Shown here: positions 14,494 through 45,329 of the stretch, piece after piece | Layout: each line of letters begins with the position of its first letter | Numbering within the stretch: the first letter of the stretch is position 1 | Source: Amphiscolops sp. MND2022 | Taxonomy: Eukaryota | Direction: 5' to 3' | Length of the DNA stretch: 64,000 nt | Assembly (NCBI GenBank): GCA_964187785.1 | Contig: OZ076416.1 | Span: forward strand, 34,596,001 to 34,660,000 | Notes under the pieces: generated by a model | The model's input: only the letters and a program-made list of their open reading frames with translations | Database searches by the model: none | Told to the model about the DNA's origin: nothing | Translations under genes and position numbers: made by a program

Positions 14494-14600
14494 AGGCGAC
14501 CAATCTTGCAGTTGATTTGGGACGAGTTTACGTCCATTTGCAAAAACAATGCTGGCCTGACAACAAATAGGCACAACACTGGAAAGTGTTATACGGTGTA
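14494..14600 (+). pseudogene. Truncated tyrosine-recombinase catalytic exon (3a)
   Basis: TTTTGCAG acceptor, then PILQLIWDEF...LTTNRHNTGKCYTV; similarity to the family stops near 14600. Confidence 0.7.
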
Positions 14601-14870
14601 TTATCAACGAAATGTCGAAATTGTTTCCAGGGGGTTTAAATTCGCAACAAGGTTCATCTGGGGTGGGGAGGTAAGTGAACACATGGCCCACGTAATGTTA
14701 TTCCCCCGCAAAAGAACATCCCTAAAATAACGCCCAACTTCAGCTGAGTTGGTCAATGATTTGGAATTTATCTTCTGTTTGTGCCTACTGTGGGGGGTGG
14801 GGAATTAAAAGAGAAAATTCTAATATTTTAAATAAGTTAAGATAATTACAACCTCCAACATCTGTTTCGG

Positions 14871-15345
14871 GGCTGGTCCGATACTGCAACTAACATGAGA
14901 AGCATTCAACGACATTGACAAATATGATCGGGAATTGACCACAAATAATCATAAAATAGGCAACTTTTATACAGTTGATATTTACATACAGCCGGACCAA
15001 CGAGAGTTTCTAATGAAACAAAGAGGGAAGTACAATAAAGAATTCCACGTCGAGCCGAAATTCATTTTCTCGTCCAGAAAGAACAAAGTGGAATCGTCCA
15101 TTTGTCGCGGCCTCGGGGAAGTCTTTTTTCGGAGACGACAAAACTAAAGTGATGTGTAACGCTAACTTTATTCGAAAATTTTGGGAGGAAATGTGGACTG
15201 TCATAAAGGACAACGTGAGCGGAGGGGTCCATAGGGTTCACCTCGCCCAGACTGCACACAGCGAGAAAACAGCCAAGGAAAAATATCTTTCCAAGAACGG
15301 AACCCGAGAGAAACGTAACAATGTTTTGGAAATATTTTTAGACCT
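14871..15345 (+). pseudogene. Tyrosine-recombinase catalytic exon (3b), interrupted by an LTR
   Basis: AGPILQLT*EAF...LTTNNHKIGNFYTV...NANFIRKFWE...AQTAHSEKTAKEKYL: candidate K, R, H and Y catalytic residues in the expected order. An LTR starts at 15346. Confidence 0.8.
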
Positions 15346-15898
15346 TGTAACGGTTGTTTGATCCCTTCACTTGACCAAACTTGTCGCCGCCCTGAATTCG
15401 GTGCTCGGCACTGCGTATCGTTACCGAACACTGCTTGCTTCTTGGATTAAAAGGACTGTATCTTGACTTAGTAGGATCCAATGATCCCGAATTGCACTTC
15501 CCTCTTGTCTCTTAACACGTCCAACTCTCCACAAGTTGAGAGTAAGTAACTTAGTCGTTTAGTCGTTCTAAGGCTTTGGCGAAAAGTCGAAAAGTGGTGA
15601 AGAAATGAATTGAGAATGTGTGGTCCTGAGACCCGCCTTTAATACAGCTTTCCAATCAATTTGTGCTTATCTAACAATGGTATACGTCTCGTTTACACTT
15701 TTGAAGTATAAATAAATGACATTTAAAGCATAATATGAAGTTATTAGCTATGTAAATAAACTATGTGGTGGTTCTGACCAATCCTTAGGTAGGCTAGAAA
15801 GTATGTTTACATATCACTAATTTCAACAGAGCTACATTCTAATGTGGTTATATAGATAAATAACAAAGTTTACATTTTCAGTTCAAGGACCTTGAACA
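15346..15898 (-). mobile_element. BEL/Pao LTR, left copy (553 bp)
   Basis: TGT...ACA termini; clearly homologous to 22338-22908 but with many substitutions and indels. Confidence 0.9.
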
Positions 15899-16167
15899 TC
15901 ACACATGTGAGGAGTAAAGGGGGTTATAATGGGTGGTTGACCTTGTAACTTGGCGGGTATGTTTCTATTAGGTACTTGCGTATGTGTGCCAAGTTTCATG
16001 TCTCTAGGGTTAGTGGTTGTCGAGAAAACCCATTTGGGGGTGTTTCCATTTTTGTCACACTTGATATTTTTTCAATATTCTATGTTTCTAAGAGTGTAAG
16101 TTTTGTTTCTCAACCAGCATGTTTTATATCGAGTTTTTTTGCCTACTGATGACTGGCGCCAATATTG

Positions 16168-19100
16168 CCGGCCCTGTTTTTTCCCGAAAAACACTTTCAT
16201 AGAACAGGGTGCCAGTTTCGCTACTGGTCTTTTAAATTTGCCATCTTTTGGTTAGACCGCTTCACATTTTCATCCACGACCCAAACCAAATCATTCACTC
16301 TGAGTTGCCTCACATCATCTTTGTTCCATTTATTACGCACGTTCCCTTCCGGTAGATATTCTTTAGTCCATCTGGTCCATATCATATCTGAATAAGCTTG
16401 CGACACTCTGAATACCCGTCGCAAGTCCGTGTAGCGTTGAGCGTCTGGTAGGAAAGGTGTCGCTAAATTTGCTCTTCCCAATAAGAAATGATTCGGTGTC
16501 AAAGCTTCCAAGTCATCTGGATCGTCACTAACACTAGTCAGTGGTCTATCGTCCATCGAGTACAACTATCATAGTTTTTTTATCATCATCAACTTCGAAC
16601 CAATCGTTCCCAGATTCCTCCAAAATGAGGGGCTCCAGGAGGTTTGAATTTCCACTTGATATCCTTTTGAGATAGAGACGTCTCAATGTCTGACTGATTC
16701 CACGCCTTTATACAATCTCTCATTTCTTTGGCTGCACCCACGAAGTTCGTCCCATTATCGCTCAGAATTGTAGCAGGTTTGCCTCGCCGGGCAATAAACC
16801 GTGTGATAGCAGTTAAGCAGAATTCTGCTTCCAAAGATGGAACAATTTCGATGTGTACTGCTCTAGTCGTCAAACAAGTGAAGAAACAGCATCATCTCTT
16901 CATAGTCTTGCGCATGAATTTCACTTCAAACGGACCAAAATTATCAACTCCAGTGTTTTTAGAGGGGAACACTCGTTCCTGCAACTTTTCTCGTGGTAAA
17001 TCAGCCATGAGTGGTTGAGACACTCCCGCTCGTTGCTTTCTACATTTGACATTTCGCTTTGACGTTCCTCAAAGTGTTTCGCAATCCAACTATCAATATT
17101 TTTGCCTCAGAACACTTCTGACGTATTCGGTGCCTTCATGAAAACTCGCTCGATGCGCCTCTTCAATCAACTTGATAACATAATGCTTTGCTGACAACAA
17201 GATTGGGTGTTTAATTTCATAACTTGACTTTGAATGTTGCAGTCGACCTTGTAGTAGTAGCAACCCATTTTGGTCCAGAAACGGCGATAAATTATTCAAC
17301 AGATCTGAAGCCGACAACGTCTGCCCTTTGGAGATCTTCTCGTAGACATTTTGAAAACTTTCCTGCTGACAACGCTTCAAAATTGCCAGCTTTGCTGCAG
17401 TGAGTTCTTCCACGGTCAGATTTCCTTTAGATTTCTTTTTCCTCCATCTAAGGCAGTATGACAGCACTAGAATCATTTTCTTGAAAGACCCAAATCTTTC
17501 CCATTTGAATGCTGGTTCCATTACCGCAGCTTCCATGACTGGTTCAGGCTCTTCTCGATTGCTGAATTGTAACTTTTCAGGCACCTTAGGCCAGGCGTCT
17601 TCTGTCTCGGTGAGCCACACTGGCCCTGTGAGCCACTCATTTTCCTTTAGGGCTTCAACTGTCATTCCTCGAGTTCAAATGTCAGCAGGATTCAATTTTT
17701 CTTCATTTAGCCGCCATTGATCGATAGTTGAGTTTTGAGAATTTCAGCAACGCGGTTTGCCATAAAGACCGGATGTTTGTTGTTGCTTGTGTGAAGCCAT
17801 TGTAGGACCGTTGTTGATCTGTCCAATGTATAATTTGGTCTACTTCAATATCATGTTCTTCCAAAATAAGCTCTCGCAGTCTTACTCCAAAAACTGCTGC
17901 CTGCATCTCCAACTTAGCCACTGTCATGATTCGTATTGGAGGTACTCTACGTTTTCCAATCACAAAGGCCACTTCGCCATTTTCTTGCTTTCTCAAATAA
18001 GCAACCATACGTATTGCTTCCAACGACGCGTCTGAGAAGATATGTAGATCTACTTTATTCACACCTGACTCAAAATATGTCCCTTTGAGGGCCATTTGGT
18101 TCACAGGTATCATCTCTGATGCCCATTTCTCAAATGCATGTCAATTTTCTTCATTCAGTTCTTTACCCCACGACTGTCCATTCTCCTTCCATTTTGAGTT
18201 CAGTAGGTGTGGCATTCTTATGGTGAAAGGAGACACTATTCCCAGAGGGTCGAATACAGCTGAAGCATGGGATAACACCGCTCTCTGTGTTATCTTCACC
18301 GGTATATCCTTCTACATGCCTCTGCATACTTCCATACTCATGCACTTAAACAGGTTCGTTTGTATTGTCCCTCCATAGAGATCTCAACACTTTGCAATCT
18401 CCCGGCGGTACTTTCGCTTGTAGGAACATCCTTCAATGTCAGCAAGGATGGTGATCTTTTGTTCTCCAAACCTAAAGATTATTCCAATCAGATTCTGCAG
18501 TAGGTCCGGCCCTGTCAAGAGGTTATCGTTAAAGGAATTTCCGCGGAATTTGGAACCTGCGTTTCACACTCGCCTCACTTTTCCTGGTTTGATTGGTTTT
18601 TCTACTGGGTGATGTGGAAAATACCAATGTCTTTCTAATTTTGTGGCTTCTAGTTCTTCTTGCTTTAGGATTCTGACGAATCCCTTCAACATCTACTTTA
18701 ATAGGGTCTTGATAGAATTTCTTCAACTCCGGTTTCTTTTCGAGTCTATACTCTAACGACTTCACTTGGCTCAATGCCGAAGAATAGTTGTTTGGCAAGA
18801 AGGTCATTTCTTTTCCAGAGAAGACCAACTTCATATCTTTCACCATCAAACTTTGTCTTTTGTTCTAGCATCTGCAGCGCCTTCTCATCTTCCTTGTACC
18901 TTCCCGATACATCGCAGCGACACGCATAGGATTCAATGTCCCACCAAGTTTCAATCTGTTCTGCCAGAGCATCATTTTCAGAAACTAGCTTCTGAAAATG
19001 ATGCTCTGGCAGAACAGATTAAAACTTGCCTACGCAAGATGCAACAGCTGTTACGCAAGATGCAGTCATCTGCACAGCTTCTTTCTGTGGAAGTGGTCCA

Positions 19101-22100
19101 CAGAGGGTCCATCCAAGTTTCGTTTTCACTGCCCATGGCTTACCATTTGTGCCGCTTTTATATTCTCCAGGCCGATGTATAGGGTAGCAGTTTTGTCCAA
19201 AATCATTTTCAAATCCTTCAGCTTCAATGATTCTTCGCTTAGTACCGACAAATGGGGTTAGGCAAGTTTGAGCTCGTATGTCCTTGCCTTGCCTCGAATT
19301 CCCACGGTGAGTAGTTCACATTTCACTTCATTTGTCCCATGTATTCCAGCCACACTCAGATCAACTTCTTCACCGTGAGCATTTAATTTGTCAGCTAATT
19401 CCTTGTCTTTGAACGACGGGCTCGCTCCAGAGTCACACAGAGCCAAGGATGATTCTTGCCTTTTGCCAACTTGAATGATGACAGGTATAACTGGCAGAAT
19501 TCCAATGCTCTTCGGTGAACGAAATGCTGAATTTGCCTCCGCTGTTCGTTGTGGGTCTTCCACTCTACTTTCTTTCGGCCGTTGGTTTGCCTCGCGATGT
19601 AGCAATCGATGATGCCGCCTGCTACAGCCTTTGTCTCCACACGCTTTGTAAGTGCAATTTTTCACATGTTTCCAGCCAAGCAACAAAAGCAGAGTTTCAC
19701 TTCTTTGGCTTTTCATATCGAGCTTGACAGGTCATCTTCAGAAACTTCTCGCATTTCCATAAGGGATAATTACCATCTTTCAATGGACAATCATGCCAGT
19801 CTTTTTGTGGGCACTGTCGTCAGCAAAGGTTGAGAACGTAGAGGTCTTTAGCTTGTCTTTATATGCCCATTTCGATTTGTCTGCGTTGGAATTGCTTGTC
19901 ATGAGAACATCTTCCTGCACTGCTGCTATCTCTTTCAACCATGCGCTGAACGCTTCCAGCCCCATACAGTAGTTGGCATTTTGTCTGGTGTGAGTCAGTC
20001 ACTTTGTTTTCATGTTCAATGGCAGTTTTCTGGTCGCACTACTCAGGACGCCTTCTGATTGCAAGTCTCCAACATAGTTTGTCTGCGTCAGAACTTGTAC
20101 ACAACTTGAAACTACTCTTGAGTATTTGACCAATGCTACAGAGTCGTACGCTTTCACTGGTGGAAAGATGTATATTTGTCTCAGTTGTGCGTTAAGAACC
20201 ACTTGTGGTCTCCCAAAGTGCACAACCAAGGTATTCCATGCAACATCATACATGTCTCCTGTGTAGCCTAGTCCGGCTATTACTTCCTTTGCCTTTCCAG
20301 TGACCAGCGTTTTGAGGTGATTCATCTTCAGAGCATGGACCGTCGAGAGGAACAACCCTGACCACTCGGCCATTCCAATGAGTCACCTGAGAATTCTGCT
20401 AACTTCAGTTTCGTGAAACTGGCTGGTAGGCTCATTATTTCGGTTCTCGTGGGTCCGACATGACTATGTGAGGCTAACGGGGTGTGCAACATGTGGAACA
20501 TGTGCAACATGTACCGTATCATTTCGTTGTTGGCTGATTCGGAGGTAAACCCTTTCCAAACTGAACATATTGTAGTGCAGCCTTCTTCAGCGTTACAGGA
20601 GCCACCTTCGAAACAATAAGATTACCCGAGTCGCTAACGTTTGCTACTGTTGGCTGTGCCATCTTAGCAGCTGGTTGAAGCAACTTCGTTGTATGCGGCA
20701 ATGCACCAGGTTGTTGTTGCATGGGTTCGCTGGCTAGGGCGATTCTGCATACATCATTCCCATTCTTCGTTAACTCAACATCAACTTCGATTTGATCAAG
20801 CCAAGAAGGTACATTTTCAAACGGATCGGTTTGAATGGGTACTGGGGAGACGCTTCGCAAACTCGTATTTTCTCGGCTACTTCCCACTCGAGCTGTTTCT
20901 ATTTCCTTTTCTGAGATTCGTAAGGCTCTTGCCTTCTCTTAGAGTTGTTTCTTTCGGATCTCGGTTTGGCGTTTCTTTGCAGCTAGTTGTTCATCAATTT
21001 CTTCTTGTTTCTTCATTGCTTCCAGTTCCATGAGCATCACTCGCTTTGTAGTAGTTGACTTTGAACTAACTGATGTTCTGTTGCCCTTTGAATGTGCCTT
21101 GCTTGCACACTGATCTCTTTCTTCAGGTAGCGAATTCACCTCATTAACACAACGATTCTCAAACGAATAGGGTCTATCGGTACCTTGTTCCACTTCTTCA
21201 TTCGCATTCTTCTGAGCAGAAGTGTCACATGACTTTAGTTTTTGCTCTTGCCAATTCACCCTGGAACGGGCCATGATTCCCTCCATACGATGCAACTCAT
21301 GGTAGATTGAAGTATCTCTATTGTGTTTCAACCACTCATCCATCTCGGCCACAATTTCGTCTCTCCTTTTGAGGGTTTCTTCGTTTGTTTCTATCAATGC
21401 TTTGTAATCCTCTGAGTTGCAAAGAGTATCCCGATTTTTATTGATTTCGTCTTCGTTTTTTCGAAGCATTTCATCACATTCCTCTTTGGAGTTTTGAAGT
21501 TGTAGGAACTCCTTCAACTGTCCTTCATTCTTTAGGCTCCGTATCATTGTGAGCATCTGACCAATGTTTTTATGTCGTGTTTCCAAGGAATCTATTTCAT
21601 TCCGATATCTGAAGAATCGGTCGCCTTTATTATCCGACCATTCTGGCTGATACTTGGCTTGCAATTGTGCTGTGCTCGCCCCCACGAGTCTCTTCCATCT
21701 AGGCAGTAGGTCTTGTCGGTTCGGTAGAAGGTCTGCGAGTTTTTCTTCGTTACCTCTGCTTTGCGCAGCTCAGCATGTATTTCATCCATTTTTGTCTCAA
21801 AGTTTTGAATTGCTTTCATGTTGCTCTCCCATTGTGGCTTGTCCATAGAACTCTTCAAATGGTTTTCAATTCTTTTGCAATCAATTCTTTGGATCAGCCA
21901 CTTTTGAAGTAGCCCAAAACCCCAGAGTACACTAACCAACCAAAGGAGTCCAAACTCTGCTGTGAAAGACAATTCCCAACAAGCCGAAGAAGTAACCCAA
22001 AACCCCCAGAGTACACAATAGCCCAAACTCCCAGAGTACAATGTAAACCAAAAATTCCAGTAATACCACTCCGAATACAATCTTGCGTCTGCAGAAGTAG

Positions 22101-22337
22101 CCCAAGCCCCAGAGTACACTAAACACAGAGGAGAGCTCAGATGTGACCACTTTGCAGCACACACAGTTTTGTATAGATAGCCACCAGTCGTCGTTCACTG
22201 TACACGTTCACTTGTTAGCACGATGCTATTCTGGCTTTGTTGCTATCAGAAAATCATCCAGTTCTCCGCCCAATTGATGATGTCCGCTCAATTGATTATG
22301 ACCGCCCAATTGATGATGTCCGGGTCGGCGGACCAAA
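16168..22337 (-). mobile_element. Decayed BEL/Pao retrotransposon internal region (gag, protease, partial RT, RNase H, integrase)
   Basis: Minus-strand frames: KLAEFSGDSLEW...KMNHLKTLVTGKAK (Pao gag), CSRRHHRLLH, protease CDSGAS, LHIFSDAS (RNase H), TRAVHIEIV...RRGKPATILSDNGTNFVGA (integrase), LTPNHFLLG...WTKEYL. The protease-RT-RH-IN order fits BEL/Pao. Many stops and frameshifts. Confidence 0.95.
22319..22335 (-). promoter_or_regulatory. Primer binding site of the BEL/Pao element (probably tRNA-Tyr type)
   Basis: TGGTCCGCCGACCCGGA starts 2 nt inside the 5' LTR on the minus strand; resembles the TGGTCCTTCGAGCCGG tRNA-Tyr PBS common in this superfamily. Confidence 0.75.
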
Positions 22338-22908
22338 TGTAACGGCTGTTTGATCTCTCACTTGACCAAACTTTACGCCGCCCTGAATTCGGTGGTCGGC
22401 ACTCCGCATCGTTACCGAACACTGCTTGCTTCTTAGAATAAAAGGACTGTATCTTGACTTAGTAGGATCCAATGATCCCGAATTGCACTTCTTCCTTGTC
22501 TCTTAACACGTCCAACTCTCCACAAGTTGAGAGTAACTAACTTAGTCGCCCTAAGTCTTTGGCGAAAAGTCGAAATGAGGTGAAGAAATGAATTGAGAAT
22601 TGAAATGGTCCTAAGACCCAACTTGAATACAGCTTTCCAATCAATTTGTGCCTATCTAGTTATGGTATACATCTCGTTTACAATTATTCGGTAAACATGA
22701 GTTGAAAGATGAAGTATAAATGACATTTAAGTGAATTATTAAAGTTATTGGCTATGTAAGCAATTCATAGTGTGGGTATAGCATGTTGGTTAGGTGGGCT
22801 CTAAAGCATGTTTACACAATGTAAATATCGTGAATTTCAACAGTTACATTCCAATGTGGTCATATAGGTAAATAACAAAGTTTACATTTTTGGTTCAATG
22901 ACCTTGAA
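22338..22908 (-). mobile_element. BEL/Pao 5' LTR, right copy (outer terminal dinucleotide missing)
   Basis: TGTAACGG...GACCTTGAA followed by unrelated GGGAATAAG repeats instead of CA. Confidence 0.88.
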
Positions 22909-24050
22909 GGGAATAAGGTATAAAATTGCAGGACGGTAGAAAAGATTTAAATGGAATAAGATCTAAAATATCTAAAGAATAACATCTGAAGGGAATAAGA
23001 TCTAAATTTTTACATCCTAATCCCCTTTTGGAAGTTAAGCATGTCACAATTTTAGATCTTAATATTTTAGATCTTATTCTTTAGATCTTATTCCTCCCTC
23101 CCAGATTAAATGTTAGAAGTATATCCTCATGCTCAGAGTTTCGAAGTTTTGAAAGTTCAAGTAAGCGGCATAAGTGCTCCTCGAGTTTCGGTAAAGACTT
23201 CAAATGAAACTTATATGAATTTGATCTGGGAAAAACCTCACCACCACCACCCCCTACGTTTGTACGTTTGAAAGGAAGCCACAAAAGAAAGTGACTGCTA
23301 CCTGGACCTGGTATAAATTCAACAATGTTCAACTCCGAATCCAACACCACCCTGATGTGAACTGGGGATTTCACCTTACATACTGAGTACACGGGGGTTC
23401 GTCAGTGCCAGCACACCTGCGCAGTGCACCTGGGCAATCTAACCCCTCTGCAGCCACCTCCCACTATTCTGCATTCACTGCCTCTATGAATGCAGCCAAG
23501 ACCACCATCCCCAACATTCAGGACACCACCCCTTCCCCCAAACATGAAATTTTTTATTGTTTATACATGATTCATTTAACAAAGAAATAAAATTTAAGGA
23601 CGGGTAAAAAATCTAAAAAAAATATGACCTAAAATTCCCCCCCTAGGTTCGCGGAATGTTTTTTGAAAAACATGTATCATTGTTTCGAAAAAATAGGTTG
23701 CTTTTTCGACATGAAACTCAACAACCATGTTTCTAAATCCAAGAACCCACAAATATTTTCCATAAATGGAGTTCAGGTTGTAAATGGATGAAGTTTCAAG
23801 TAATTACAAGTTGAAAACAGAGGTTATGGACATTTACATGTTCTTTTACATAAGATGGGATAGTTGGAATGGGATGTTGCGAACGACTATTTTTAACAAA
23901 TTACGCACTGGCATTCGTACAAACGGGTTGTGCTTTGCAGATTTAAGTTTGTTTCTGTTCCTGCGCTGACGGGGTATCGTTTTTCGCGTTTGCCTTAAAA
24001 CCGCGAGGATTTTGTTCAAAAAGTGAGATAACTCTGGTAGTAAAGACAAA

Positions 24051-24167
24051 ATGTCATTTTAAAACTTACTACCCAGTAGTAGAGTTGTTTTGAAATGTCA
24101 CTACCACTAATGAGGACGATTCAAAATGGCTTGCTACTACAGAAAAATTTTCCAAGTGTCATCGATA

Positions 24168-24198
<31 letters not shown>

Positions 24199-26093
24199 TA
24201 GGTATGAATGGCATTTTAGTGTGGTTGTGGTAGTTGTTATCATGATATTTTGGTCACTCAAGCACACTAAGATGTCATTCTAAAATGGATTTGCCCAAAT
24301 ACTTTTTTTGAGAAGTTGTAACGTTCCAGCACACTGCTTTAGAGAACGTAAAAGAAATAATAATAAAAGTAATAATGAACATCTCAAAACTTTTTTTTAA
24401 AGTAGGAAACCATTTTTTCCATGACATTTTAGACCATTTAGTAGTGGAGATGACATTTTGGGTTATCCCGCAAACTTAAAATGGCCACCATAACAAAATG
24501 TTTGGTAGTGACAAAATTTGTCGAGTATATTGTCGAGAACGTGGCTTCTGGAGGGTCCCACCAAAGAAAACAATTTAATTGGTAATGAAACGTATGGGTA
24601 AGTACGCCCTCTATATTTTAGTTCTGAAAAGATTTTTGGAAAACAGCTGTTCATTGATTGGTACATAATGACATTTTAAAACTTACTACTCAGTAGTAGG
24701 GTTGTTTTAAAAAATCACTATCACCAATGAGGACGATTCAAAATGGCTTGCTACCACAGAAAAATTTTCAAAATGTCATCGATAAGTAGTAGTGGTATTA
24801 GTATAGGTATCATTAGCATTTTAGCGCCCTTGTGATAGTTGTTATCATGACATTTTGGTCGCTCAAGGACACTAAGTTGTCATTCTAAAATGGATTTGCC
24901 CAAATACTTTTTTTGAGAAGTTGTAACGTTCCAGCACACTGCTTTAGAGAACGTATTTGAAATATATGAAAGCAATAATGAACATCTATAAACTTTTTTT
25001 AAAGTAGGAAACCATTTTTTAATGACATTTTAGATCATTTAGAAGTGGATATGACATTTTGGGTTATCCCGCAAACGTAAAATGGCCCCCATAACAAAAT
25101 GTTTGGTAGTAACAAAATTTGTCGGGTATATGTGTTGGCTATGATAAAATTTCACGACTTCAAATCACAATATCCCAGTATAATGTACTTTTAAAGAGGA
25201 TCTCAGTTAGGGGATCAAAACGTTTCGCCCATAACAAGACCCACGCCGAGAACGTGGCTTCTGGGGGGTCCCACCAAAGCAAACAATTTAATTGGTATTG
25301 AAACGTATGGGTAAGTACGCCCTCTATATTTTAGTTCTGAAAAGATTTTTGAAAAACAGCTGTGCATTGATTGGTACATAATGACATTTTAAAACTTACT
25401 ACCCAGTAGTAGGGTTGTTTTAAAAAATCACTACCACCAATGAGGACGATTCAAAATGGCTTGCTACCACAGAAAAATTTTCAAAATGTCATCGATAAGT
25501 AGTAGTGTTATTAGTATATGTATCATTGGCATTTTATTGTCCTTGTGGTAGTTGTTATCATGACATTTTGGTCGCTCAAGGACACTAAGATGTCGTTCTA
25601 AAATGGATTTGCCCAAATAGTTTTTTGAGAAGTTGTAACGTTCCAGCACACTGCTTTAGAGAACCTATTTGAAATATTCGAAAGTAATAATGAACATCTA
25701 AAAACATTTTTTAAAGTAGGAAACCATTTTATTATGACATTTTAGACCATTCAGTAGTGGAGATGACATTTTGGGTTATCCCGCAAACTTAAAATGACCA
25801 CCATAACAAATTGTTTGGTAGTAACAAAATTTGTCGGGTATATTGGCTTGCCATGATAAATATTCACGACTTTAAATCACAATATCCCAGTATAAGGTAC
25901 TTTTACAGGGAATCTCAGTTAGGGGATCACAATGTTTCGCCCATAACAAGACCCACGACGAGAACGTGGCTTCTGGAGGGTCCCACTAAAGCAAACAATT
26001 TAATTGGTAATGAAACGTATGGGTAAGTACGCCCTCTATATTTTAGTTCTGAAAAGATTTTTGGAAAACAGCTGTGCATTGATTGGTACATAA
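24051..26093. repeat. Three tandem units of ~620-710 bp, non-coding
   Basis: The (T)CATTTTAAAACTTACTAC anchor recurs near 24051, 24669 and 25381; each unit ends GCTGT(T/G)CATTGATTGGTACATAAT. Confidence 0.95.
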
Positions 26094-27289
26094 TAGTCTG
26101 AGTGACCAGTGACGGCTTTAGAAGTTTCTCAACGGGTTTTTGAATTTCTCAACAGGAGTGGGAGTGGAATGGCTAAGAAACATGACCAAATTCAGGGTAT
26201 ACCAGTTATATTAATTTAAACTATTAAATACTACAGCATTGTACCCATTTTAACCTACCTCTTAAAAAGAAAATGAACGGAAAGAATAACTTGAAAACAA
26301 ATCAATCCCTCCCCACTTCAACTGAGGAAATCACCTTCACCCCCGACCAGAATGGGTCAGGTCACTTCCCCAAAAAATGAGACACACAAATTGAAGCAAT
26401 TGCATTACTCGAAATCTTGCCGTATTAGAAGTTTTTTAAAGTTTTTACCAGTTTGAGATGGACCAGCACAATTCTTCAAACTCAAGGTAAAACTAATAGT
26501 ATAAAGTATATAAGTTAAAAATACAGAATAATTATACGAATTTGCAGCTAACAGTTTAAATGTTCTTTTTAGGTAATTTACAGTAGGGTCATCTAAGTAA
26601 TTTGGTACTGACTAAATTATCTAAATACTGTTTTACGCAATGTCTACAAACTAAATGTAATCAATGAACTGTATGGAAAGACTGTAAAACATCTAATCTA
26701 AAGTCTTCAAGACAATTGAAGCATTTTTGGCATCTTGTGTGAGCACTTTGTTTGACCCGCATCTCTCTCTTTTTGACACCTAAACACTTGATAAAAATGA
26801 AAATTTTGTACGGAAATTAGGAAAAAGAAAACTTTCAAATTATACGTAGCACTATACGACCATATTTCTTATTTTTTTGTCTAGAGTCTAAACTTCAATA
26901 TTAATTTTCAAAAAAAGTGAATACACTTTTGTACATTTATGTCATCAATTATTCATAAGTACATTCTAAGAATTTCTTCAGTAATTATCGTTCCAAAATT
27001 CTAATCAATCACATTAAAAAAACTTCATTCATACTAACTGGTCTTCAAAATGTATATGATTAAAAACAAATTGCGTTTGACGCAAATGTTCTTCCTAAAT
27101 TGAAGGTTATCAGTGACAACACCAGTGAAAAGTTTGGTACTCATAATAGTTAGCAAAAATTCACCAAGCTCCTCTTAATTCTTCCATTCAACTCTCAAAT
27201 ACAGCAGCTACTCACTCCAGTCAAAAAATTTCATAAACTTACAAGTTTCCATACTTTCATTAGTTCTGCTTTCCATAAGTTCCACTAGC

Positions 27290-28405
27290 AAGCCAAGGGA
27301 ACTCCGAGGTCGTGCTTTGAAGTCCCCTCCGAAAAAGTACCTAGCCAATTGCCGAAAAAGTCGAAAACCGAACAACGAGCAACGCAACCATGTGAAGAAG
27401 TCAAAAAACGAATAACACGAGCCACTCAACCATGTGAAAAAGTCAGAAAACGAACAACACGAGCCACACAACCTTACGAAGAGGTCCCAAAACGAACAAC
27501 ACGAGCCACACAACCTTGCGAAGAAGTCGAAAAACGAACAACACGAGCCACGCAACCATGTGAATTTGAATCTGATCATTTTTTTAAAAAAAAGATTGCA
27601 AAAGTCTCCCCTTAAACCAACATCTCGGGCAAAACAGCTCTCGCAAAAAACTGCCCAAATGGTTAAAAAAACATCCACTGAATACACTGAAAGTTGCGCA
27701 CCCTGTAGCTGCTCATCTCTGAAGGATACCATTGAGCCACTTTGCTCAACTGTTGGGCGATGAACTACGCGCATTTCCCAAACTGCCCCCATCAGTAGCA
27801 AAAAGTCAACATGTCTATATTAACTTTGCAGAAGTTGAAGACTGCATGGACGTCATGGACTGTATATCAGATCTGGAAATAATTTGTCCAACCGAACCAA
27901 TAGCTGCAAAAAGTGTAATTGAAGCAATGCTGCCAAAGCCGAAAGCAGTCGTTTCTTCACTCCAGGTTTTGGACCCCTGTTATGAACCTTGGCAGATTCT
28001 GGGTTTCATAGATGCCGAAGGAACCTCATTTATTTTGGACAATTGTTTTGTGACCTCTCACAAACGTTGCTTCCATGAAAACATTGAAACCCTTTTGTCT
28101 CTTGAAAAGTATCGCGAGATGCATGATAAAATTTAGAAATCCTATGTGCAAAGCTTGGAATGGGTATGTTATATTCCAACTCCTATGTATGGCGTGAACC
28201 CCCAATACACAGAACTTGCAGTTGTATCTTCGAAGAAGATGAAATCCAAAACAACCATCGAGGGGTTGACAGGGTTCACTGCCCTTGTCAAAGAAGAAGA
28301 CCTGAGTGAGCAAAAGCAGTTCGTTGTATTTCAAGGAGCTCAAATGTCAAAAATTATGCTCGGCCCGGCTAGCTTCGTCAATCACGATTACAAACCAAAC
28401 AGCAG
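27290..28405 (+). pseudogene. SET-ZnF-tyrosine recombinase copy B, exon 1 (basic repeats plus Suv4-20-like SET N-terminal half)
   Basis: ILDNCFVTSHK...VCYIPTPMYG...TIEGLTGFTALVKE...IMLGPASFVNHDYKPNSR|GTAAT, collinear with remembered KMT5B (LDPYLGFQTHK...LWLGPAAFINHDCRPNC). Internal stops present; start position approximate. Confidence 0.85.
27368..27563 (+). repeat. 39-bp coding minisatellite, 5 copies (KRTTRATQPCEEV)
   Basis: ACGAACAACACGAGCCAC(A/G/T)CAACC...GAAG repeated in frame. Confidence 0.95.
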
Positions 28406-28509
28406 GTAATTATTAACTTTTTAAAACATGATTTTGGGTCATTAGGGAAATTCAAAACTAACTATTTAAGTAAGGTAGTTCGCACAAAATTTAAAAATGC
28501 AGGAAAATT

Positions 28510-28582
28510 CGTCAATTCCGTGAACCGAACTCTAGACCCTTGCGTTATCAGCACGTTGGTCTAATCGACTGAGCGATCGGCC
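28510..28582 (-). pseudogene. Degenerate tRNA-Ile-derived sequence in intron 1 of copy B
   Basis: Reverse complement GGCCGATCGCTCAGTCGATTAGACCAACGTGCTGATAACGCAAGGGTCTAGAGTTCGGTTC aligns with eukaryotic tRNA-Ile (GGCCGGTTAGCTCAGTTGGTTAGAGC...GTGCTAATAACGCCAAGGTC...GTTCGATCC); acceptor and T stems are broken. Confidence 0.7.
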
Positions 28583-28705
28583 TTGATAAATCGTTGTTCT
28601 AATTCAATCATATTCGCTCCGCAACACTAAATTTATTTTGAAAAAAATGGTTTTTAACAGTTATCTCAATAATTTTTAAATATTATATACCTTTTTATGT
28701 TCTAG

Positions 28706-29737
28706 ATTCAATGCTGCCGGGGAAAATAAAAACACAATTGTGAGAATCGAGATTTTGCGGGAGATTGAGGAAGGGGAAGAATTTTTAGTCTCTTACTATC
28801 CGAATTTTTTTGATGAAAATAATAAAAACTGTCGCTGTTTCTCATGCCAAATAACGAAGCCCTTACCCCCAGTCCACTAGCAGCTGTTGAAGTGAAGTCC
28901 AGTGCCTCGTTTGTGATAGCATTGTAAAAAGATTCGAGAGACATATATTGCAGCACTCCGACGTTCTCAATCCAAAACAAAGACAAATCATCTTGGACTT
29001 CTATAGGACCAAAAACGCTAGAAACGGAAAGTTGTGTATGATTGCACCAAATGCTTCCGGAGATTTGGGTCTCTAAACAATCATAAAACAACAAAATCTC
29101 ACTATGGCCCTGAAGATATTATTAAAGTTGAACATCCAGAAAGTAGAGCTTCACTTCCCCTCGAAGTAAAAGCAGCACTGAAATCGAAAGTTTTGACCAA
29201 TCGTAGGGACCTTGAAGTAGCCCAGAGATTTGACCAATATGAATCAAACTTGGCAAAGTGCAGTCGAGAGCACAGAACGTGGAGTCAGGACTGAGGTGGG
29301 ATCGTTAAATTGATGAGACAGATGTTCAAAATGACTAGTGGACTAAGAAAACCCGAAGTTTTGGTCAGGGGCTGCTTAGAATTAAAAGAGACGAAAGGGC
29401 TGAAACCTCAAACGATGCCTAATTTATCCACGTTCCTACTGTTTGTGAAATACTGCTACCTTGCAGGGGAGACTAATACCAAAACCCCAGGGTTGGATCA
29501 AAAAAGAATGATGACGGCAATTCGAGATGCCCGAAAAGCCTTTTCTCCCGCTGCAGCAGAAGAATATAGGGTCACTTCTGATGCAATGAGGAAGCTAGTA
29601 CCCCCCAGTGATGTTGTTTGGCAAAAATATCAGAAAATTTTGAAACACTTGTCGGTTAACTTGACAGAAAACAATTTATTCTACAGAACCCCAAAAATTT
29701 TGAACTTCTTCCTTTTACAGGGACGAATAAATACAAG
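28706..29737 (+). pseudogene. Copy B exon 2 (SET C-half, post-SET, Zn fingers, core-binding-like region up to the first catalytic Arg)
   Basis: ILREIEEGEEFLVSYYPNFFDENNKNCRCFSC; CLVCDSIVKRFERHILQH (from 28903); YDCTKCFRRFGSLNNH; AIRDARKAFSPAA; LNFFLLQGRINTR|GT. Confidence 0.88.
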
Positions 29738-30790
29738 GTTGATTGATTTATAGTATGTTTTTGCTTCGAAAACATTTTATGAAAATCAACAAATGTAACA
29801 ATTGTTACATCTGGTAATTTTTATAAAAATATCTTCCATTAAATTTATGAAATTAACAACACAAAGCTTACCACTAACCAGGAATTGAAGCAATTGATTG
29901 TAGTCCTTATTTAAACTGCGGTAAGCTGCTCCGATGCAGGTTTCGGAATGATAATCATCTGTTGTAGTATCAGTTATAAAACTAACAACAATCAAGTATT
30001 TTAATAATTTAATAACTTCCATGATCAATCGACGTGTTGAGGAGTTGTTTGAACAAATGAACAAATCAAAACAAATGGAACATAATAGTTTCGAATAGAA
30101 TTGCAGAAAAAAAGTTTGTATATTGTGGGGGAATAAAATTGTAAAAAAGTAAAAGAATATGATCGAATTAGAACAACAATTTATTTTACAAAATGTGAAA
30201 AAGAAACAAAAAAAGTTGGAATGTTGAAGGAATTGTTTGAACAAATGAACAATTCAAAACAAACATAGTAGGTTCAAATAGAACTGCAGAAAAAGTCTAG
30301 ATCTTCGAAGGAACATAAACGTTTCCCCAAAACAACAGTGAATTTTGAAAACTCCATTTGTTTTGAATCATTGTACTATGAATAGATTTGCAACTTATAT
30401 AATGGCGTGAATGCTAATCATGTGTGTAAAAACTGTCTTGTCATTATCAAATTTAATTCAATCATTTCATAAAAACAACTTTTCAAACAACAACAATTTA
30501 GTACAAGCCACCAATGTACTACTACAAAATAGTACTGGCTTACGGGTTTGGTAAATAACCACACGTTTGAATTCACACGTGTACCTTCAGACAGGATTCT
30601 GGTTGCTGCGCGTACAAGCCAACCATGTTATTATTACATGGTCTTTATAATGAAAGCAACTACATGTACATGTATTACCCATCTTTAGCAAAACACAAAG
30701 TTTATTAGCAATGTGTCCTAATTAACTGAATACAGCATGAGTTGGTTTTATAAATTACAACAATCAAATTCAATTTGTTGTTTGTTTCGG

Positions 30791-31740
30791 AGCAGCGCAC
30801 ATTCTTCAGTTTACTTGGGAAGAATTCGAAACAATTGCCACGATAAACAGGGAGCTCACAACCAATGCAATAAAACTGGTAAAATATACACTCTTCATAT
30901 ATACATCCAAGAAGATCAAAGAGAGTTTCTGAGGGCGATGAAAGCAAAATACCTAGAAAAATTCAAAGTTGAACCCTTATATGTCTTGGCTTCCACTGTC
31001 AACAAAATCGAAAGAAGTATTTGTCGTGGGCTACAGGATGTTTTCAAAAATCTATTCGGAGACGACCATTTCGGTTCAATTCTAACTCCATCAGGAAATT
31101 CCGGGAAAGATTATGGAGTGTCATCAAGTGTTTTGTTAGCGATGGCGTGAACAAAGCACAACTTGCGCAAACGGCACATTGCGAAAAAACAGCACATGAA
31201 AAGTATTTGGCAAGAAATGGTACCGGAGAAGAGAGGCAAAGCAGGTGATTGATTTTTACGCTCAGCGTTTAAGGCACCGAGAAGATGACGAGAACCAAAT
31301 TCTCGCATCGTTCGCCACAGAAGAACTAGCAGACAAAGAAGTTGAGTCAAACATAGACGAGGAGGACCAAAATGAAGCCTCGTAAATGATAACGCCTCTT
31401 ACGCCTCTACCAGTGACCAGATTTGATATGGTCCGCGATTCACTCCAAGCCACAAACCAACCAGCCATCAATGAGTTGTCCCCCCAGTAGCTTTCATCTC
31501 CCCAGCAGGAGTGATACCGCAGGAGTGATACAGCAATGTCTCAATATTTAGCCTTCTTGAAGAATTTTAGAGTTAGGGCAGCTAAACCACAATGGACAGA
31601 GGAACAAAAGAATGCATGCCTGTTGTTCCAGCAGTACCGCGGAACTGTCCGCGAGGGCGAAGTCCGTAAACGAATCGATAAGGAAAGCTACGGTTTGACA
31701 ACTCAGCAAATTGGAAGAACGAGAAAATTAGGTTTGCAAC
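30791..31740 (+). pseudogene. Copy B exon 3 (recombinase catalytic domain, acidic linker, Myb/SANT-like tail)
   Basis: AAHILQFTWEEF...NKTGKIYTL...NSNSIRKF...AQTAHCEKTAHEKYL, acidic EDDENQ...DEEDQNE, then KPQWTEEQKNACLLF; frameshifts present; end approximate. Confidence 0.8.
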
Positions 31741-33898
31741 TGGCGTCTTTCGCAAACCCAAAGCTTCCTTATTTCCACATGTTGTTTTTTGTATGCTCTT
31801 TACATATTAGTTATATTTAATTTCAAATATCATATTTTTATTGACGTTTTCAAGTAATGTGCATTGTATTTTTATGTGTTCATTTACTCTGCATGGTATT
31901 CATATACTTTTTTAGGTATTCACATATTATGCACTTTTATTACATGAATCAAATATCATGCATGTTGTTTAGGTTTTATTTTTATGACACTTATGATTAT
32001 TGTATTTGATATTGCTATTATACATTTATTGATGTATTCATATATGATGCATGTTATTCAAGTTTTATATTTATTGTAATTATATTTATTATATTTAATA
32101 TTGTTATTATATATTTATTGATATATTCAAAAAACATGCTTGTTACTTAAGTTTTATAAATGTATTATTTTTACTCTTATCTATACATTATATGTAAAAT
32201 GAATTTACTCATTACACAAACTTTTTTCTAATAAAATGCCTGGTTCTGAACGAATTTTTGATACGAGTCGAAAACTTTTGTTATGACATGCCTGGCTCTA
32301 AAAGAATTTTTGACGCGAGTCTAAGGACTTACATCTGAAGGTCCATTGGAAATAACGTCTAAAGGAATAACATCTAATAAGAAAAATGAGGAATTACGTC
32401 TAGTAGTTCAGCAATAACTTCTAAAAATTGGAATAACCTCTGCAAAAAGTTTTAAAGTCTAAAGTTGTCAAATATTTACTAAATATATGTATTGGTTCAT
32501 TAGAGAATATACTGATGAATGTTTCTCCAAAAAATAGACTTGGTTGAACAATGATTTTCAAAAATGCTTATAACAGAACTTCAGAATTGCAGCAGTGTTT
32601 AGTGCATAGCAGCTCTCGCGGCTTCAGGTACATGTTTTGCTGGCTAGCTTCACGTCAGTTTACTGACGTCTCTTGACTAACCCGATGTTTCCAACTTAGG
32701 AGTATCCCAAATAGGAGTTTCCACAGTCTTAGGAGTTTACCTGACTCATACCTGACCGGAACTGAACGAATATTTCATATACGAATTCAAATCATCATAA
32801 ACTTTTATTGTGAGATAAAATTTTAGGAGTATGTCCTCATGCTCAAAGGGCTTCGAATTTTTGAAAAAAATGGAAAGTTCTTTATTAGAAAGTAAAAAAA
32901 GCCTGTACCTGGAGGACTTCGATAAGATAAAATGACGATGTTAGGATAAGATCAAAAAATTGACGATAAGATAAATTGACAATGTCGAATAAAAGATGAT
33001 AACATAAAATGAAAATTGACGATGTCTGGATAAAAAATGACGATGTTGTTTCTAAAGCAGCAGTTATCGTTTCTATTAATTTTCCCCCACTGTCGTCAAG
33101 TTACGTCCCCCATATAAAAATTCAGAAAACCCATTCACACAAAATAAATTAAAATAAAATAAAAAAGAGGTCACCCATCGAAGTTTTTACCAATTGTATT
33201 ATGGAAATCATTTTTCGAGCGTCTAGAGTAGATGGGTTTAATTGAAACGATTCACTCTTTGTTCTTGTTGTCAGAATGCTTTTGTTCATTTGTTTTGAAT
33301 ACATATGGCAATACAGAGTTCAAAACAATTGACAAAAAAATCAAAACGATGTGAACGAAGAAATTGGAATTGTGAAAATCCATTTATGAACCATGCCGGG
33401 ACTGAACGAAATTTTCACCGAAGAACAACTGTGCCGTCATAGTTAATTTGACGTCACTGCTGTGACGTCATAATTGATATGCTGCTGTGACTTCAACATG
33501 GACCCGTGTTTCTCTTTGAACTCAAACATTGAACCGTATTATCTATTTTACGTAATACTTACTTAATATAGTATTTTATACTGTTTTTGTTTAAAATATT
33601 GTTTATTATTCAAAATAAAATGAAATTATATAAAAATGACATGTATTTAAAAGATATAAATATTATAATTTGAACAAAATACGAGGACGGGAGGAATTTC
33701 TTCTTTGCCCCACACTTAATTTCTTTTACAATCTATTACTTGAACTTCCTTTAAACTTTGATTCTGACAGCTACTACTTCTGAAGTTCTATTCATTTTAT
33801 TACAACTCACATCTAACAATCAGACTGTTTAAATCACCGTACAGAGTCCTAATACGACTTTCTCCAATTAGTATTATTCCAACCAATCTTGAAAAAAG

Positions 33899-35043
33899 AT
33901 GCCAGTTGCGCTAAGGCGCCGACAAGGCACTGAAAAGGAACGAGTGGAACCGCCTTCGAAGAGTCGTAAAATTGACCCCCCTGAACCAATTGAAGGAAAA
34001 AATACAAGACGTAGTAGACAGCAATCAAATCTGGCTGAGAAGTGTACGACTGCCGCAAACCCCTGGAAAAAAAGAATCTCCATCAGTCAAAAACTACTAG
34101 ACAGCAAACCAACAATGCGCAAAAATGTCAGAAAGGGAAAAGTCCTCCGGAAGAAAGTGTACAGCCCTCTCAATCGAGAATTACTCGACAACCAGTAAAA
34201 ATGGCAGAGAAACCACCGCACTCGAGAACTACTCGACAGCAAAAAACTGCAGCTGTGGAAAAAGGACTCACATGCCAAAAAACAACAGACGTCATCCACG
34301 AGGACTGCGACATCATGATAGAAAAAAGTAGAACGGGAAATGAAAATGAGGAAGTGACTTTGAATTTCTATCCAACTAGTTCTTCAACATTTATGGAAGA
34401 ACACATAGAAAAAAACGAGATCCCGCAGACGGAAACCAGACGGAAACAATCGAAATACAACAGCACGAAATCAGAGAAACACCTTTTTTCGAGTACTTTT
34501 TCGATTTGGACGTAATCAGCGAAAAAGTAGCAGTTACGCCCTAAATGGATAGTGTCCAGAACGATTTCAAAAGGGCTCAAATTCGAACAGTAGATGTATT
34601 CGAACGTTCTTATAAATCTTGGGAAATTTTGGGTTTTGTTGACGCCCAACTGAAGGAAGATTTTATTGACAATACTATTGTCACATCACATAAGCTCTGC
34701 GTTCATGAGAAGTACCCAGAATTCATCAAAGAGCCAAAATATGACAAATTGCATCTGATGATGTATCAGTCATATGTGGAGGCAATGGAGTCGGTGGCTT
34801 TTGTCCCAACCCCCAGCTACGGGGACGGCCAAGAGTTACACAACCTGCGGTAGTAGCCGTTCAAACAGTTCCACGAAAAGGGCTGATTGGCGGATTGAAG
34901 GGATTTACCGCAGTAACTGATTCGCAAGACCTGAAACCTGGCGTGGGATTTTCATTGTTTGGCCGAAGTCTAATCCAAAAGGAAGAACGAATCATGTTAG
35001 GTGCGGCCAGTTTTCTCAACCACTGTTGCGACCCAAACGCCAG
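33899..35043 (+). pseudogene. SET-ZnF-tyrosine recombinase copy C, exon 1
   Basis: TTRQQ-type basic repeats; WEILGFVDA...FIDNTIVTSHK...VAFVPTPSYG...LKGFTAV...IMLGAASFLNHCCDPNA|GTAAG; start approximate. Confidence 0.85.
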
Positions 35044-35123
35044 GTAAGATTGTTTTAAATAATTTATTAGTAATGATAATACGACAAAAATATTAGGAAG
35101 CCAATTTAAAGTAAATATCCAAG

Positions 35124-35197
35124 GGCTGCAAAGCGGATTCGATCTTCAGGCCCTGTGCTTGGGAACTTGACGCACTACCCATTCAACCATTCCACCT
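35124..35197 (-). pseudogene. tRNA-like sequence (A/B-box-like motifs, TTCCCAA loop) in intron 1 of copy C
   Basis: Reverse complement ...GGAATGGTTGAATGGGTAGTGCGTCAAGTTCCCAAGCACAGGGCCTGAAGATCGAATCC...; stems do not pair well. Confidence 0.45.
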
Positions 35198-35340
35198 ACA
35201 TTTGTTTCTTTTCGTAATTAAATCCATTGTGGTTAAGAATTTGAATTAACTTGTAGCATCCTCATGCTCAAATTTCGAATATAATAGTATCATTATAAAA
35301 AAAGACATGTAGTAAATCTATATATAATTTGATGTTTTAG

Positions 35341-36647
35341 ATACGTTGTAACTGGCGAAAAAGTGCGACGTTTGTTACAATAGATACCATCCGAGAAATT
35401 AAGAAAGGAAAAGAAATGACAGTTTATTACGACATTGATTTTTTGGTAAGATACCAAGGATTGTTCGTGTCCAGAATGCGAAAAAAAGTTGCGAAAAGCA
35501 AACCTCAAACTAAAGAATTCAATCAAAGTGAAATTCGAACAGAAATTGGAGCTACGTCCTCCGCAGTGTAACTTAATGAAGCTAAATTGAATCAATTCAA
35601 ATCAAAACAGAAGATGAAGGCAGTTCCAGCACAGTTGAAGCCACCCCCACGCTGCGCCACCTCCCCTTGAAGCCACCCCGCGCTGCGCCACCCCCTGTTG
35701 AAGCCACAGCCCCCGCTGCGCAACCCCCTGTTGCAATGAGCCCACCTCTAGAAGCTTCTGATGAGCTGCAGCTCATCAAACGAGACAAAAAAGTCAAAAA
35801 CACGCCGGGGCCAGAACAGCGTATTGTGTGCAAAAAACTTTTTCTACGTTTGGACAAACACATCGAGACACATGCCGATCGCTTGTCTGTAACTAAATGG
35901 CGACAGTTCATCTTGGGTTTCTGTCGATGCCAAAATGCGCCACCAAACGTGAAATATTATGACTGTTCGGCATGCTTCAGACGTTTCAGGTCACTTCCTA
36001 CGCATAGGTATGGTCCCAGATGTTCTCACGCTTCAATTACTGAAGTCTCAAACCCCGGAAGCCGAAGATCACTTCTTGAAGAAATCAGAAAAGTTCTGAA
36101 GTCGGATGTACTGCCAAGCCAAAACGACTTGGAAATAGCTGAAAATTTTGTTGGAAATAGAAATCAACTGTCTGTGGGGGAAATGAAAATGGTGCCAAGA
36201 CAGACTGGGGATGAAACCTCTCAAGGTCATGTTTTATCGAAGAACAAACGGATTGACTCAACAAGAACGTCTAGTGCAAACTTGCCTGCAAATTGAAAAA
36301 GAAAGAAACTTTAAACCCAAACAAGGGTAAGTTTCCTGTCAACGTTCGTTGTTTTCTGTGATTATTGTTTCCTCTATGGTGTAGGCGTGAGTTCAACCTC
36401 AAATGGAGACCGAATTGAAGCAGCAATTAAGGATGCCAGAAAAGCTTTTGCCACGGCTGCTGTACAAAATTACCGGACTTTCGGAAAACAGCGCAATAAA
36501 TGATGACAAAGGTCCTCAGTAACACTTTGGTGAGACTTAGAATCAAACAAACTGTGGAGCAACTGCAAAAATATAGTAGATTGTTTTCAACTACAAAACT
36601 CAGCAGAGCTTGAATTTTTTCCTGCTTCAAGCTAGAATTAACACAAG
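35341..36647 (+). pseudogene. Copy C exon 2
   Basis: TTTTAG acceptor; IREIKKGKEMTVYYDIDF...CSCPEC; Pro/Ala repeats; CKKLFLRLDKHIETH; YYDCSACFRRFRSLPTH; AIKDARKAF; EFFLLQARINTR|GTACGT. No catalytic exon recognised downstream. Confidence 0.85.
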
Positions 36648-37244
36648 GTACGTATTTTGGATTAGGTTTTTGAAACAACCTAATTTTACCAGCATTTCTA
36701 GTAAAACTGGTAGAAAACTGAAAATGATTAACTAACAGATTTGTTGATTAGATAAACAGAGGTAGTAATAAGTTGAAGTGAAAGCAGAAGTGGATAATTC
36801 AAGTTAGTGAATATTTCAAATGAACTCCGAAATGGATTTTTGAAGTGTATAATTCAAGAATTAATTTCGTTATGAACTCATACTGAAATTAAAAACTACA
36901 AAGTTGAAGTAGAAGGAAAGTAAACCAAAAACATATAAGAATTATTGTAATGAGAATTTACAAATTCATTGTACTAGATGAATCAAAAATTTTTCGAGTA
37001 CTTAAAAGTCAACAAACGTCTCAAAGCTTTGAAAGTGTGAAGGAAACGACTGGTATAGTCGTTTAGACTATTTTTGATGGTTCAAACCATCTTTGGTTGG
37101 AGATGCGATTACGTAATATGAGCTTCACCCAAAAAGATTGAAAGATAAAATTGAGAGATTCACGTTTTTTCGGTTCACATAATATAAGAATTTCAGTTGA
37201 GAAGCATTCAGTTCAACAGAATAGTTAATCAATACACGCACTGT

Positions 37245-45320: not shown

Positions 45321-45329
45321 AGGATGTCA

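Follow-up and report, generated by a model that had tools for sequence, protein, structure and literature searches.

A likely DNA transposon of Amphiscolops sp. that joins a Suv4-20-type SET domain to a predicted tyrosine recombinase

The DNA analyzed here, referred to as the window, is a stretch of 64,000 nucleotides from Amphiscolops sp. MND2022 (GenBank assembly GCA_964187785.1, contig OZ076416.1, positions 34,596,001 to 34,660,000 of the forward strand), which is eukaryotic, with about 38% G+C and no N. The region 25,509-33,598 on its plus strand is, very probably, a decayed and right-truncated copy of an animal DNA transposon of 8-9 kb, in which a SET domain is joined to a tyrosine recombinase (YR), and which would be excised as a circle and re-inserted at (TAG)n microsatellites. 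The gene within this copy, termed copy B, is a heavily broken three-exon pseudogene. An earlier sequence-only reading had proposed such a protein at this place, and the present analysis documents its gene path, its intact relatives, and the ends of the element that carries it.

The reference for copy B consisted of proteins translated from the three open exons of L003, an intact relative. Residues 191-347 of L003 exon 1 aligned to window positions 27945-28406 (47% identity, E 7e-46), exon 2 to 28695-28865, 28897-29034 and 29022-29744 (54-55% identity, E 7e-87), and exon 3 to 30774-31756 in five frame-shifted pieces, with identity up to 73% (E 1e-42). The order of the exons in L003 is the order found in the window, and the open pieces of 27,290-31,820 (plus strand) give a single path; this collinear alignment bore out the one reading path that had been drawn through the region from its letters. 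The parts of the element copy and of its gene are as follows.

25509-33598, plus strand: whole element copy B, decayed, with about 500 bp of the right end, including the arm, missing
25509-27289, plus strand: 5' non-coding region of copy B, with clustered ATGACATTTTR motifs, homologous to the L003 5' region
27290-28405, plus strand: exon 1, encoding a basic N-terminus and then the N-terminal half of SET (27945-28405)
28406-28705, plus strand: intron 1, GT...AG, which splits SET after NHD(C)xPNxR
28706-29737, plus strand: exon 2, encoding the C-terminal half of SET with post-SET, two zinc fingers, core-binding-like helices and NTR
29738-30790, plus strand: intron 2, with donor GT and the acceptor mutated to GG (not AG)
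30791-31820, plus strand: exon 3, encoding the YR catalytic domain (30791-31245), an acidic linker (31245-31500) and a helical tail (31515-31757)

Within these exons, the basic N-terminus contains 42-bp coding repeats (27354-27564), the C-terminal half of SET and the post-SET CxCxxC occupy 28706-28865, and the first catalytic Arg of the recombinase, in NTR, lies at 29729-29737, the very end of exon 2. The intact relatives have canonical GT-AG boundaries at both introns, which are in the correct phase and at identical codon positions. Intron 1 of copy B coincides in position with that of the intact L003 gene and that of copy C, and intron 2 with that of L003 and that of copy A, copies A and C being two further gene copies in the window that are described below. 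The junction 28405/28706, called from the letters, was exact, with donor GT and acceptor AG; the coordinates of the junction 29737/30791 were exact as well, the acceptor being GG in the window and AG in the intact relatives. The motifs reported in the same reading, namely NTR, ILQFTW, KTGK, IRK, AHCEKTAHEKY and WTEE, were all located in copy B.

The decay of copy B extends over all three exons. The codon aligned with the ATG of the relative is AAG (at 27290), and in-frame stops are found at 28134, 28878 and 29292, with further ones in exon 3. The reading frame changes at least seven times in total: in exon 1 between approximately 27615 and 27732, in exon 2 at approximately 28870-28897 and at 29022-29034, and at least four times in exon 3 (approximately 30880-30920, 31066-31072, 31227-31236, and 31719).

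Judged from the reading frames of the relatives, the fusion of SET and YR is real and is encoded as one three-exon protein, as had been claimed for copy B. In L003, exon 2 is one open frame that takes in the C-terminal half of SET, the two fingers and the SAM-like core-binding helices and reaches the recombinase's NTR, so that parts of both domains lie in one open exon. Neither exon 1 nor exon 3 alone encodes a complete domain. Since exon 2 is shared by the end of SET and the first Arg of the recombinase, neither domain can be made without it. In L002, a relative from a different assembly (ERZ25071359), the SET, zinc fingers, core-binding part, YR and tail follow each other in a single collinear line that lacks introns and whose only interruptions are one stop and two frameshifts. 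Two other relatives, P0045 and P0052, have one open reading frame (ORF) that covers the SET, the zinc fingers and the beginning of the core-binding part. Lastly, P0049 (683 residues) and P0051 (747 residues) are intact relatives that have no SET and retain the fingers, core-binding part, YR and tail, which argues that SET is an addition in one branch of the family. It is to be noted that these two come from ENA/Logan contigs of approximately 3-6 kb, which might be transcripts.

The SET domain of the element is of the KMT5B/C (Suv4-20) type as judged by its sequence relatives, the closest of which are SUV420H1/H2. For the window piece 28137-28406 (90 residues), SUV420H2 and KMT5B were the sole solved relatives (E 7.6e-5), and the same pair gave the best solved match to intact L003 exon 1 (E 2e-7) and to the C-terminal half of the L002 SET (E 1.9e-15), in agreement with the Suv4-20-like assignment made earlier. 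Other SET families, such as NSD2, EHMT1 and viral SET, scored only about 1e-3. The NHDCxPN, GEE..SY..F..N and post-SET CxCxxC motifs are kept in five lineages that are only 38-60% identical, the latter two being invariant, and this retention across diverged lineages argues that the domain has been under selection in the element. The NHDC and the CxCxxC zinc cluster are conserved in the intact relatives; copy B has Tyr in place of the Cys of NHDC. Methylation of histone H4 lysine 20 (H4K20) may be written or read by the enzyme at its own sites, but this we purely infer.

The identity of the recombinase was approached through predicted structure. An AlphaFold (AF2) model of the relative P0013, built with 23 sequences, had a predicted local distance difference test score (pLDDT) above 90 in its core. 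When this model was compared with the PDB by Foldseek, nearly all matches were lambda Int, XerH, XerA, XerD, Flp, YopR/MrpR and topoisomerase IB, with probabilities up to 1.00. The VIA-align Z scores were 12.7 for an archaeal Xer, 11.7 for XerH, 10.8 for Cre, 10.3 for Tn1549 Int, and 9.5 for lambda Int and Flp; indeed, the first 43 VIA-align entries all had the YR or topoisomerase IB fold (Z 12.7 to 8.0). Structure searches of Atlas, AFDB and BFVD agreed with a YR fold, the top BFVD matches being phage integrases and VLF-1, and these structure searches revealed no particular affinity to the YRs of nimaviruses or of other viruses. In the family alignment, R107, K135, R211, H241 and Y250 are invariant or nearly so, with K135 placed in HKTGK on a predicted beta hairpin, and the spacing from His to Tyr is 9 residues (H-x8-Y), the same as in Cre, XerD and lambda Int. 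Copy B itself keeps NTR, KTGK, IRK and AH...KY. Together, the modeled fold and the catalytic motifs support the assignment of the domain formed by the end of exon 2 and by exon 3 as a putative YR.

The remaining modules of the protein are the zinc fingers and the tail. Zinc finger 1 of copy B lies at approximately 28900-28955 and zinc finger 2 at 29034-29100; both show the pattern C-x2-C-x12-H-x3-5-H, and the Pfam zf-C2H2 match was weak (E 0.1). The tail of copy B (31515-31757) aligns to a conserved C-terminal block of the family, and the tail was modeled as four helices with a pLDDT of 85. Its best solved matches in Foldseek were weak, being helix-turn-helix (HTH) domains of Fur/PerR with E of 0.3 or more. 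The tail had been called Myb-like, and this name was not sustained: Pfam gave no Myb/SANT match for it, and no Myb was among the top 50 Foldseek matches. One Atlas cluster of similar YR proteins does bear the label HTH myb-type.

A search with the core-binding profile against 1.84 billion proteins retrieved 51 relatives, and those with a listed source all came from unannotated ENA, Logan or JGI assemblies. The relative P0064 is an exon-3 product of 399 residues that is encoded identically at 8 places in ENA assembly ERZ25074608; at each place, an exon-1 ORF of 347 residues and an exon-2 ORF of 417 residues lie at fixed distances upstream, and are slightly shorter at two of the places. The 8 L003-type loci have 8.4-9.3 kb in common at 99.1-99.7% identity, beyond which their flanks are unrelated. 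All three exons are open in most of these copies, and the introns are at matching places. The count for this sister lineage is a lower bound, i.e., at least 8 dispersed copies. Another sequence of the same assembly, L011, is 100% identical to window positions 28322-30753, which places the intact copies in the window's own genome. Thus, near-identical copies of the kind that the sequence-only reading suggested seeking in the source genome do exist there, in different flanks, and the family is multicopy; a single locus, syntenic across relatives, was what the reading had named as telling against it. The intact L003 element of 8.3 kb has no gene beyond the three exons of the one gene, and no reverse transcriptase (RT) or RNase H. 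The earlier reading had stated that no RT lies next to any copy; BEL/Pao genes do occur at 16-22 kb of the window, where they belong to a separate insertion on the opposite strand.

The ends of the element were defined from the flanks of these copies, and consist of inverted arms abutting (TAG)n. In 8 of the 8 intact copies, the shared sequence starts directly after a (TAG)n tract and stops directly before another one, the length of the tract varying widely among the copies. The inverted arms beside the tracts of the L003 type are 20 nt long and 85% complementary. In L005, two copies stand head to tail, and their joint reads right arm-(TAG)n-left arm; as a further observation at this locus, which is in the same genome, three SET-domain ORFs spaced at about 2.1 kb (L005:13062-18355) lie downstream of the two tandem full elements. 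The intronless L002 lineage, from the other assembly, likewise has (TAG)n and then a related arm at its left end. The L001 lineage, which is in the genome of the window, has a different arm pair that encloses (ATA)8 at three junctions. This further SET-YR lineage (L001:2124-15886) has its (ATA)8 between TTTGGCAYTGCG-type inverted arms, with a deleted copy of 4.25 kb and a full copy of 9.4 kb in tandem.

Upstream of copy B, non-coding DNA of the window matches the end sequences of L003, and the following features were recognized there.

24046-24173, plus strand: right end of an upstream element copy, with terminal arm; it ends at J1 and is homologous to the L003 right end
24155-24218, plus strand: junction J1, made of right arm, (TAG)7 at 24170-24190, and left arm
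24191-24790, plus strand: mini-element 1, internally deleted, with the left-end region and about 130 bp of right end
24772-24823, plus strand: junction J2, made of right arm, (TAG)n and left arm, to the left of mini-element 2
24796-25503, plus strand: mini-element 2, internally deleted, with J2 at its left
25485-25536, plus strand: junction J3, made of the right arm of mini-element 2, (TAG)2, and the left arm of copy B

The right end at 24046-24173 shares 90-92% identity with those at 24663-24790 and 25376-25503. By self-BLAST, mini-element 1 matches the 5' region of copy B at 91-98% (24191-24532 and 24534-24669) and then the right end, and mini-element 2 matches 25509-26094 at 92% (24796-25382) and then the right end. 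The inverted arms of mini-element 2 are 15 nt long and 73% complementary, and those of J3 are 15 nt and 80% complementary. In the window, the arm patterns occur only at J1-J3, for which 0.06 and 0.31 matches were expected by chance. The motif ATGACATTTTR is found 14 times in the window versus 0.29 expected, and 13 of the 14 are in 24047-25773; short motifs of the ATGACATTTT type cluster near both ends of the elements, and a related motif does so at both ends of L003. The extent of copy B was read from L012, a paralog in the same genome, of which 1343-9828 is collinear with window 25513-33598 at 78-89% nucleotide identity, the similarity starting at the left arm. L012 continues to a right arm and (TAG)2 at about 10340, i.e., about 500 bp further, which indicates that copy B of the window has lost its right end.

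These features are consistent with a mechanism in which the recombinase would bind the arms, and perhaps subterminal motifs through its fingers or tail. The element would then be excised as a circle, with right arm-(TAG)n-left arm as its joint, and re-inserted through strand exchange, either within a (TAG)n tract of the genome or at a junction already present between elements, the microsatellite serving as the crossover (overlap) region. After such an insertion, (TAG)n would flank the element on either side, and the tandem stacks would be accounted for. As a more tentative suggestion, the SET domain may act in cis on nucleosomes near the recombinase, where it could methylate H4K20 on or around the element or serve to tether nucleosomes. 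We also consider, tentatively and with clearly less conviction, a broader proposal: that the family is a new superfamily of animal DNA transposons with its own H4K20-type methyltransferase, in which the site would be set by which trinucleotide microsatellite serves for the crossover, (TAG)n or (ATA)n depending on the lineage, the mark would be written or docked on where the DNA is cut and joined, and the target could be re-aimed through a change of the spacer repeat.

Several points weigh against the reading of copy B as such a transposon. The gene models were derived from open frames and splice-site reading and not from RNA, and neither a circle nor an empty site nor a transcript came to light. 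Matches to the arm patterns and to the right-end sequence are confined to 24.0-25.5 kb of the window, and so are missing at the right end of copy B, and the left end of L012 has no clear (TAG)n. The activity and the substrate of SET are predicted only. Regarding the recombinase, neither the Pfam YR models nor DUF3504 matched the window pieces or the full relatives, PF00589 (Phage_integrase) was absent from 23 members at E of 10 or less, and the family profile retrieved from PDB sequences only low-complexity noise and no solved YR. Of the earlier claim of a YR, then, the fold and catalytic layout stood in the AF2 model, whereas Pfam or profile matches did not come forward; since the domain is unseen by hidden Markov models, the YR call rests on predicted structure and motifs. 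Moreover, the His of HxxR is replaced by Asn family-wide (Asn208, NxxR). This last feature and the silence of Pfam would suit a domain that is catalytically dead and acts as a DNA-binding module, with the copies being spread by another route. We regard this as improbable: little or no variation is seen in the two Args, the hairpin Lys, the last His or the Tyr, which keep canonical spacing, the 99%-identical copies are recent, and the element holds no other gene. The position of the HxxR His also varies in active relatives, being Lys in poxvirus topoisomerase IB and Tyr in the telomere resolvase ResT, which further counts against a dead enzyme.

It could also be that (TAG)n is carried by the element rather than being its target, as a terminal simple repeat that grows by slippage, with insertion occurring elsewhere or unspecifically. 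The great differences in (TAG)n length between copies, the L012 left end and the failure to see an empty site would all fit this explanation, which we nevertheless consider rather unlikely, because each of the 8 copies has (TAG)n directly at its two ends, and because two lineages with different arms use (TAG)n versus (ATA)n exactly between the inverted arms, which is the geometry of a YR crossover. The presence of three diverged copies (about 40% amino acid identity) on one strand within 30 kb might instead evoke a tandem cluster of domesticated, immobile host genes. Such a cluster is very improbable, given that copies A, B and C are all pseudogenes amid many other transposons, that the sister lineage has 8 near-identical copies in unrelated flanks, and that the elements have defined ends, junctions and mini derivatives. 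Finally, the SET and the recombinase could be two neighboring genes joined only by our splice reading, since transcript data are lacking and the gene caller of the assembly gives three separate ORFs. To this we assign hardly any weight: an open exon 2 holds the C-terminal half of SET together with the start of YR, exons 1 and 3 are incomplete by themselves, the parts follow in this order along a single intronless line in L002, and P0045 and P0052 combine SET, the fingers and the beginning of the core-binding part in one ORF.

As a rule, mobile elements receive chromatin marks and do not author them. A SET-recombinase transposon that is intact and recently active in this genome offers a direct way to ask if an element uses or sets H4K20 methylation, and whether that mark serves in the choice, protection or silencing of the sites where it inserts. 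Inverted arms around a lineage-specific repeat would amount to a simple eukaryotic system of site-specific integration, with a target apparently set by a short repeat, which would be of interest to transposon biology, to microsatellite evolution, and possibly as a tool. Copy B itself is dead, and is of value in that it points to the family and exemplifies tandem stacking. The element ends, the junctions and the mini-elements are new in this analysis.

The closest described kind of element is the Crypton, reportedly described by Goodwin and colleagues in 2003. Cryptons are likewise YR-only DNA transposons without RT, with introns and deletion derivatives, and are thought to move via a circle. 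In contrast to them, the SET-YR family has no DUF3504 or Phage_integrase match, carries an N-terminal SET and two zinc fingers as well as a conserved C-terminal helical domain, and ends in inverted terminal arms of 15-20 nt beside a microsatellite. Animal Cryptons (CryptonA/CryptonI) match DUF3504 at E of 8e-12 or less and have neither a C-terminal domain nor terminal repeats (Kojima & Jurka 2011, PMC3212892), so that the family departs from Cryptons on all three counts; the same paper mentions neither histone methyltransferase nor microsatellites (PMC3212892). No paper on a SET-YR element was found in the literature, the repeat catalogues Repbase and Dfam being outside the scope of the search, and the earlier suggestion of an undescribed YR family thus holds in this respect.

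Other known systems share single features with the element. The host H4K20 di/tri-methyltransferases KMT5B/KMT5C (SUV420H1/H2) have the NHDCxPN and GEEIT..YG..FFG..N..CxCxxC motifs in common with it; the SET of the element differs from them in being the N-terminal part of a transposon recombinase, and its activity is predicted only. SETMAR, the primate SET-mariner fusion, has a SET domain and a transposase in one protein, but it is a single immobile host gene, its transposase is of the DDE type and not a YR, and its SET belongs to another family. The DIRS, Ngaro and VIPER elements are eukaryotic YR elements, and a methyltransferase-like domain is also part of DIRS; unlike the intact 8.3 kb SET-YR element, they encode RT and RNase H. 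The prokaryotic elements Tn916/Tn1549 and CTnDOT have a similar recombinase fold (Tn1549 Int, Z 10.3), and the end-to-end junctions of the SET-YR element would fit a circle whose joint carries the crossover sequence, as in those elements; they differ in having no chromatin domain and in targets that are not microsatellites. The nearest functional analogue is found in the YRs of endogenous nimaviruses, which combine a C2H2 zinc finger, a SAM-like N-domain and a YR, insert in simple repeats such as (TAACC)n, and are reported to be unrelated to Cryptons (PMC10871703). These differ in lying inside giant viral genomes and in having no SET.

In the AFDB, four clusters of animal proteins (K1R6F8, A0A087XM20, A0A1I8Q4P6 and A0A498MQS7) have C-terminal parts that align structurally to the YR of the element, and carry automatic names for other N-terminal domains, respectively SETD8-like, SET, homeobox and DDE_Tnp4. 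The SET-type names of K1R6F8 and A0A087XM20 are automatic labels, and only the structural alignment to the YR part was used here. These alignments suggest that this kind of YR may have been fused to various domains, and that relatives are probably present but unrecognized in public proteomes.

The two other gene copies of the window belong to different lineages, and the three copies A, B and C show no relation to one another at the DNA level, being related at the protein level only.

8558-15343, plus strand: copy A, of a different lineage with about 40% amino acid identity to copy B; three zinc-finger and core-binding units and one exon 3
34040-36660, plus strand: copy C, of a different lineage; basic repeats, a SET interrupted by an intron at the matching position, zinc fingers, and a core-binding part ending in NTR

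No SET was found in copy A (8558-15343) and no exon 3 in copy C (34040-36660). The three zinc-finger and core-binding repeats of copy A are in tandem at 8558-13911, with a period of about 2.2 kb, and tandem repeats of 95-98 bp lie between the units at 10555-10768 and 12741-13041. Copy A is followed by a BEL/Pao long terminal repeat (LTR) retrotransposon at 15346-22908 on the minus strand, recognized by Peptidase_A17 and DUF1759 gag matches; the two direct repeats that resemble its LTRs are about 570 bp long, lie at 15346-15896 and 22338-22908, and are 81% identical. Because it starts 3 bp past the last recognizable exon 3 residue of copy A, it has probably cut that copy, and no linker or tail of copy A was recognizable beyond the insertion, at 22.9-23.9 kb. 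Elsewhere in the window, a Helitron fragment with Helitron_like_N and Pif1 2B domain matches occupies 51606-54309 (plus strand), and a satellite with a unit of 161 bp, a higher-order period of 483 bp and 70-79% matches is found at 45293-46524 and 48202-48579.

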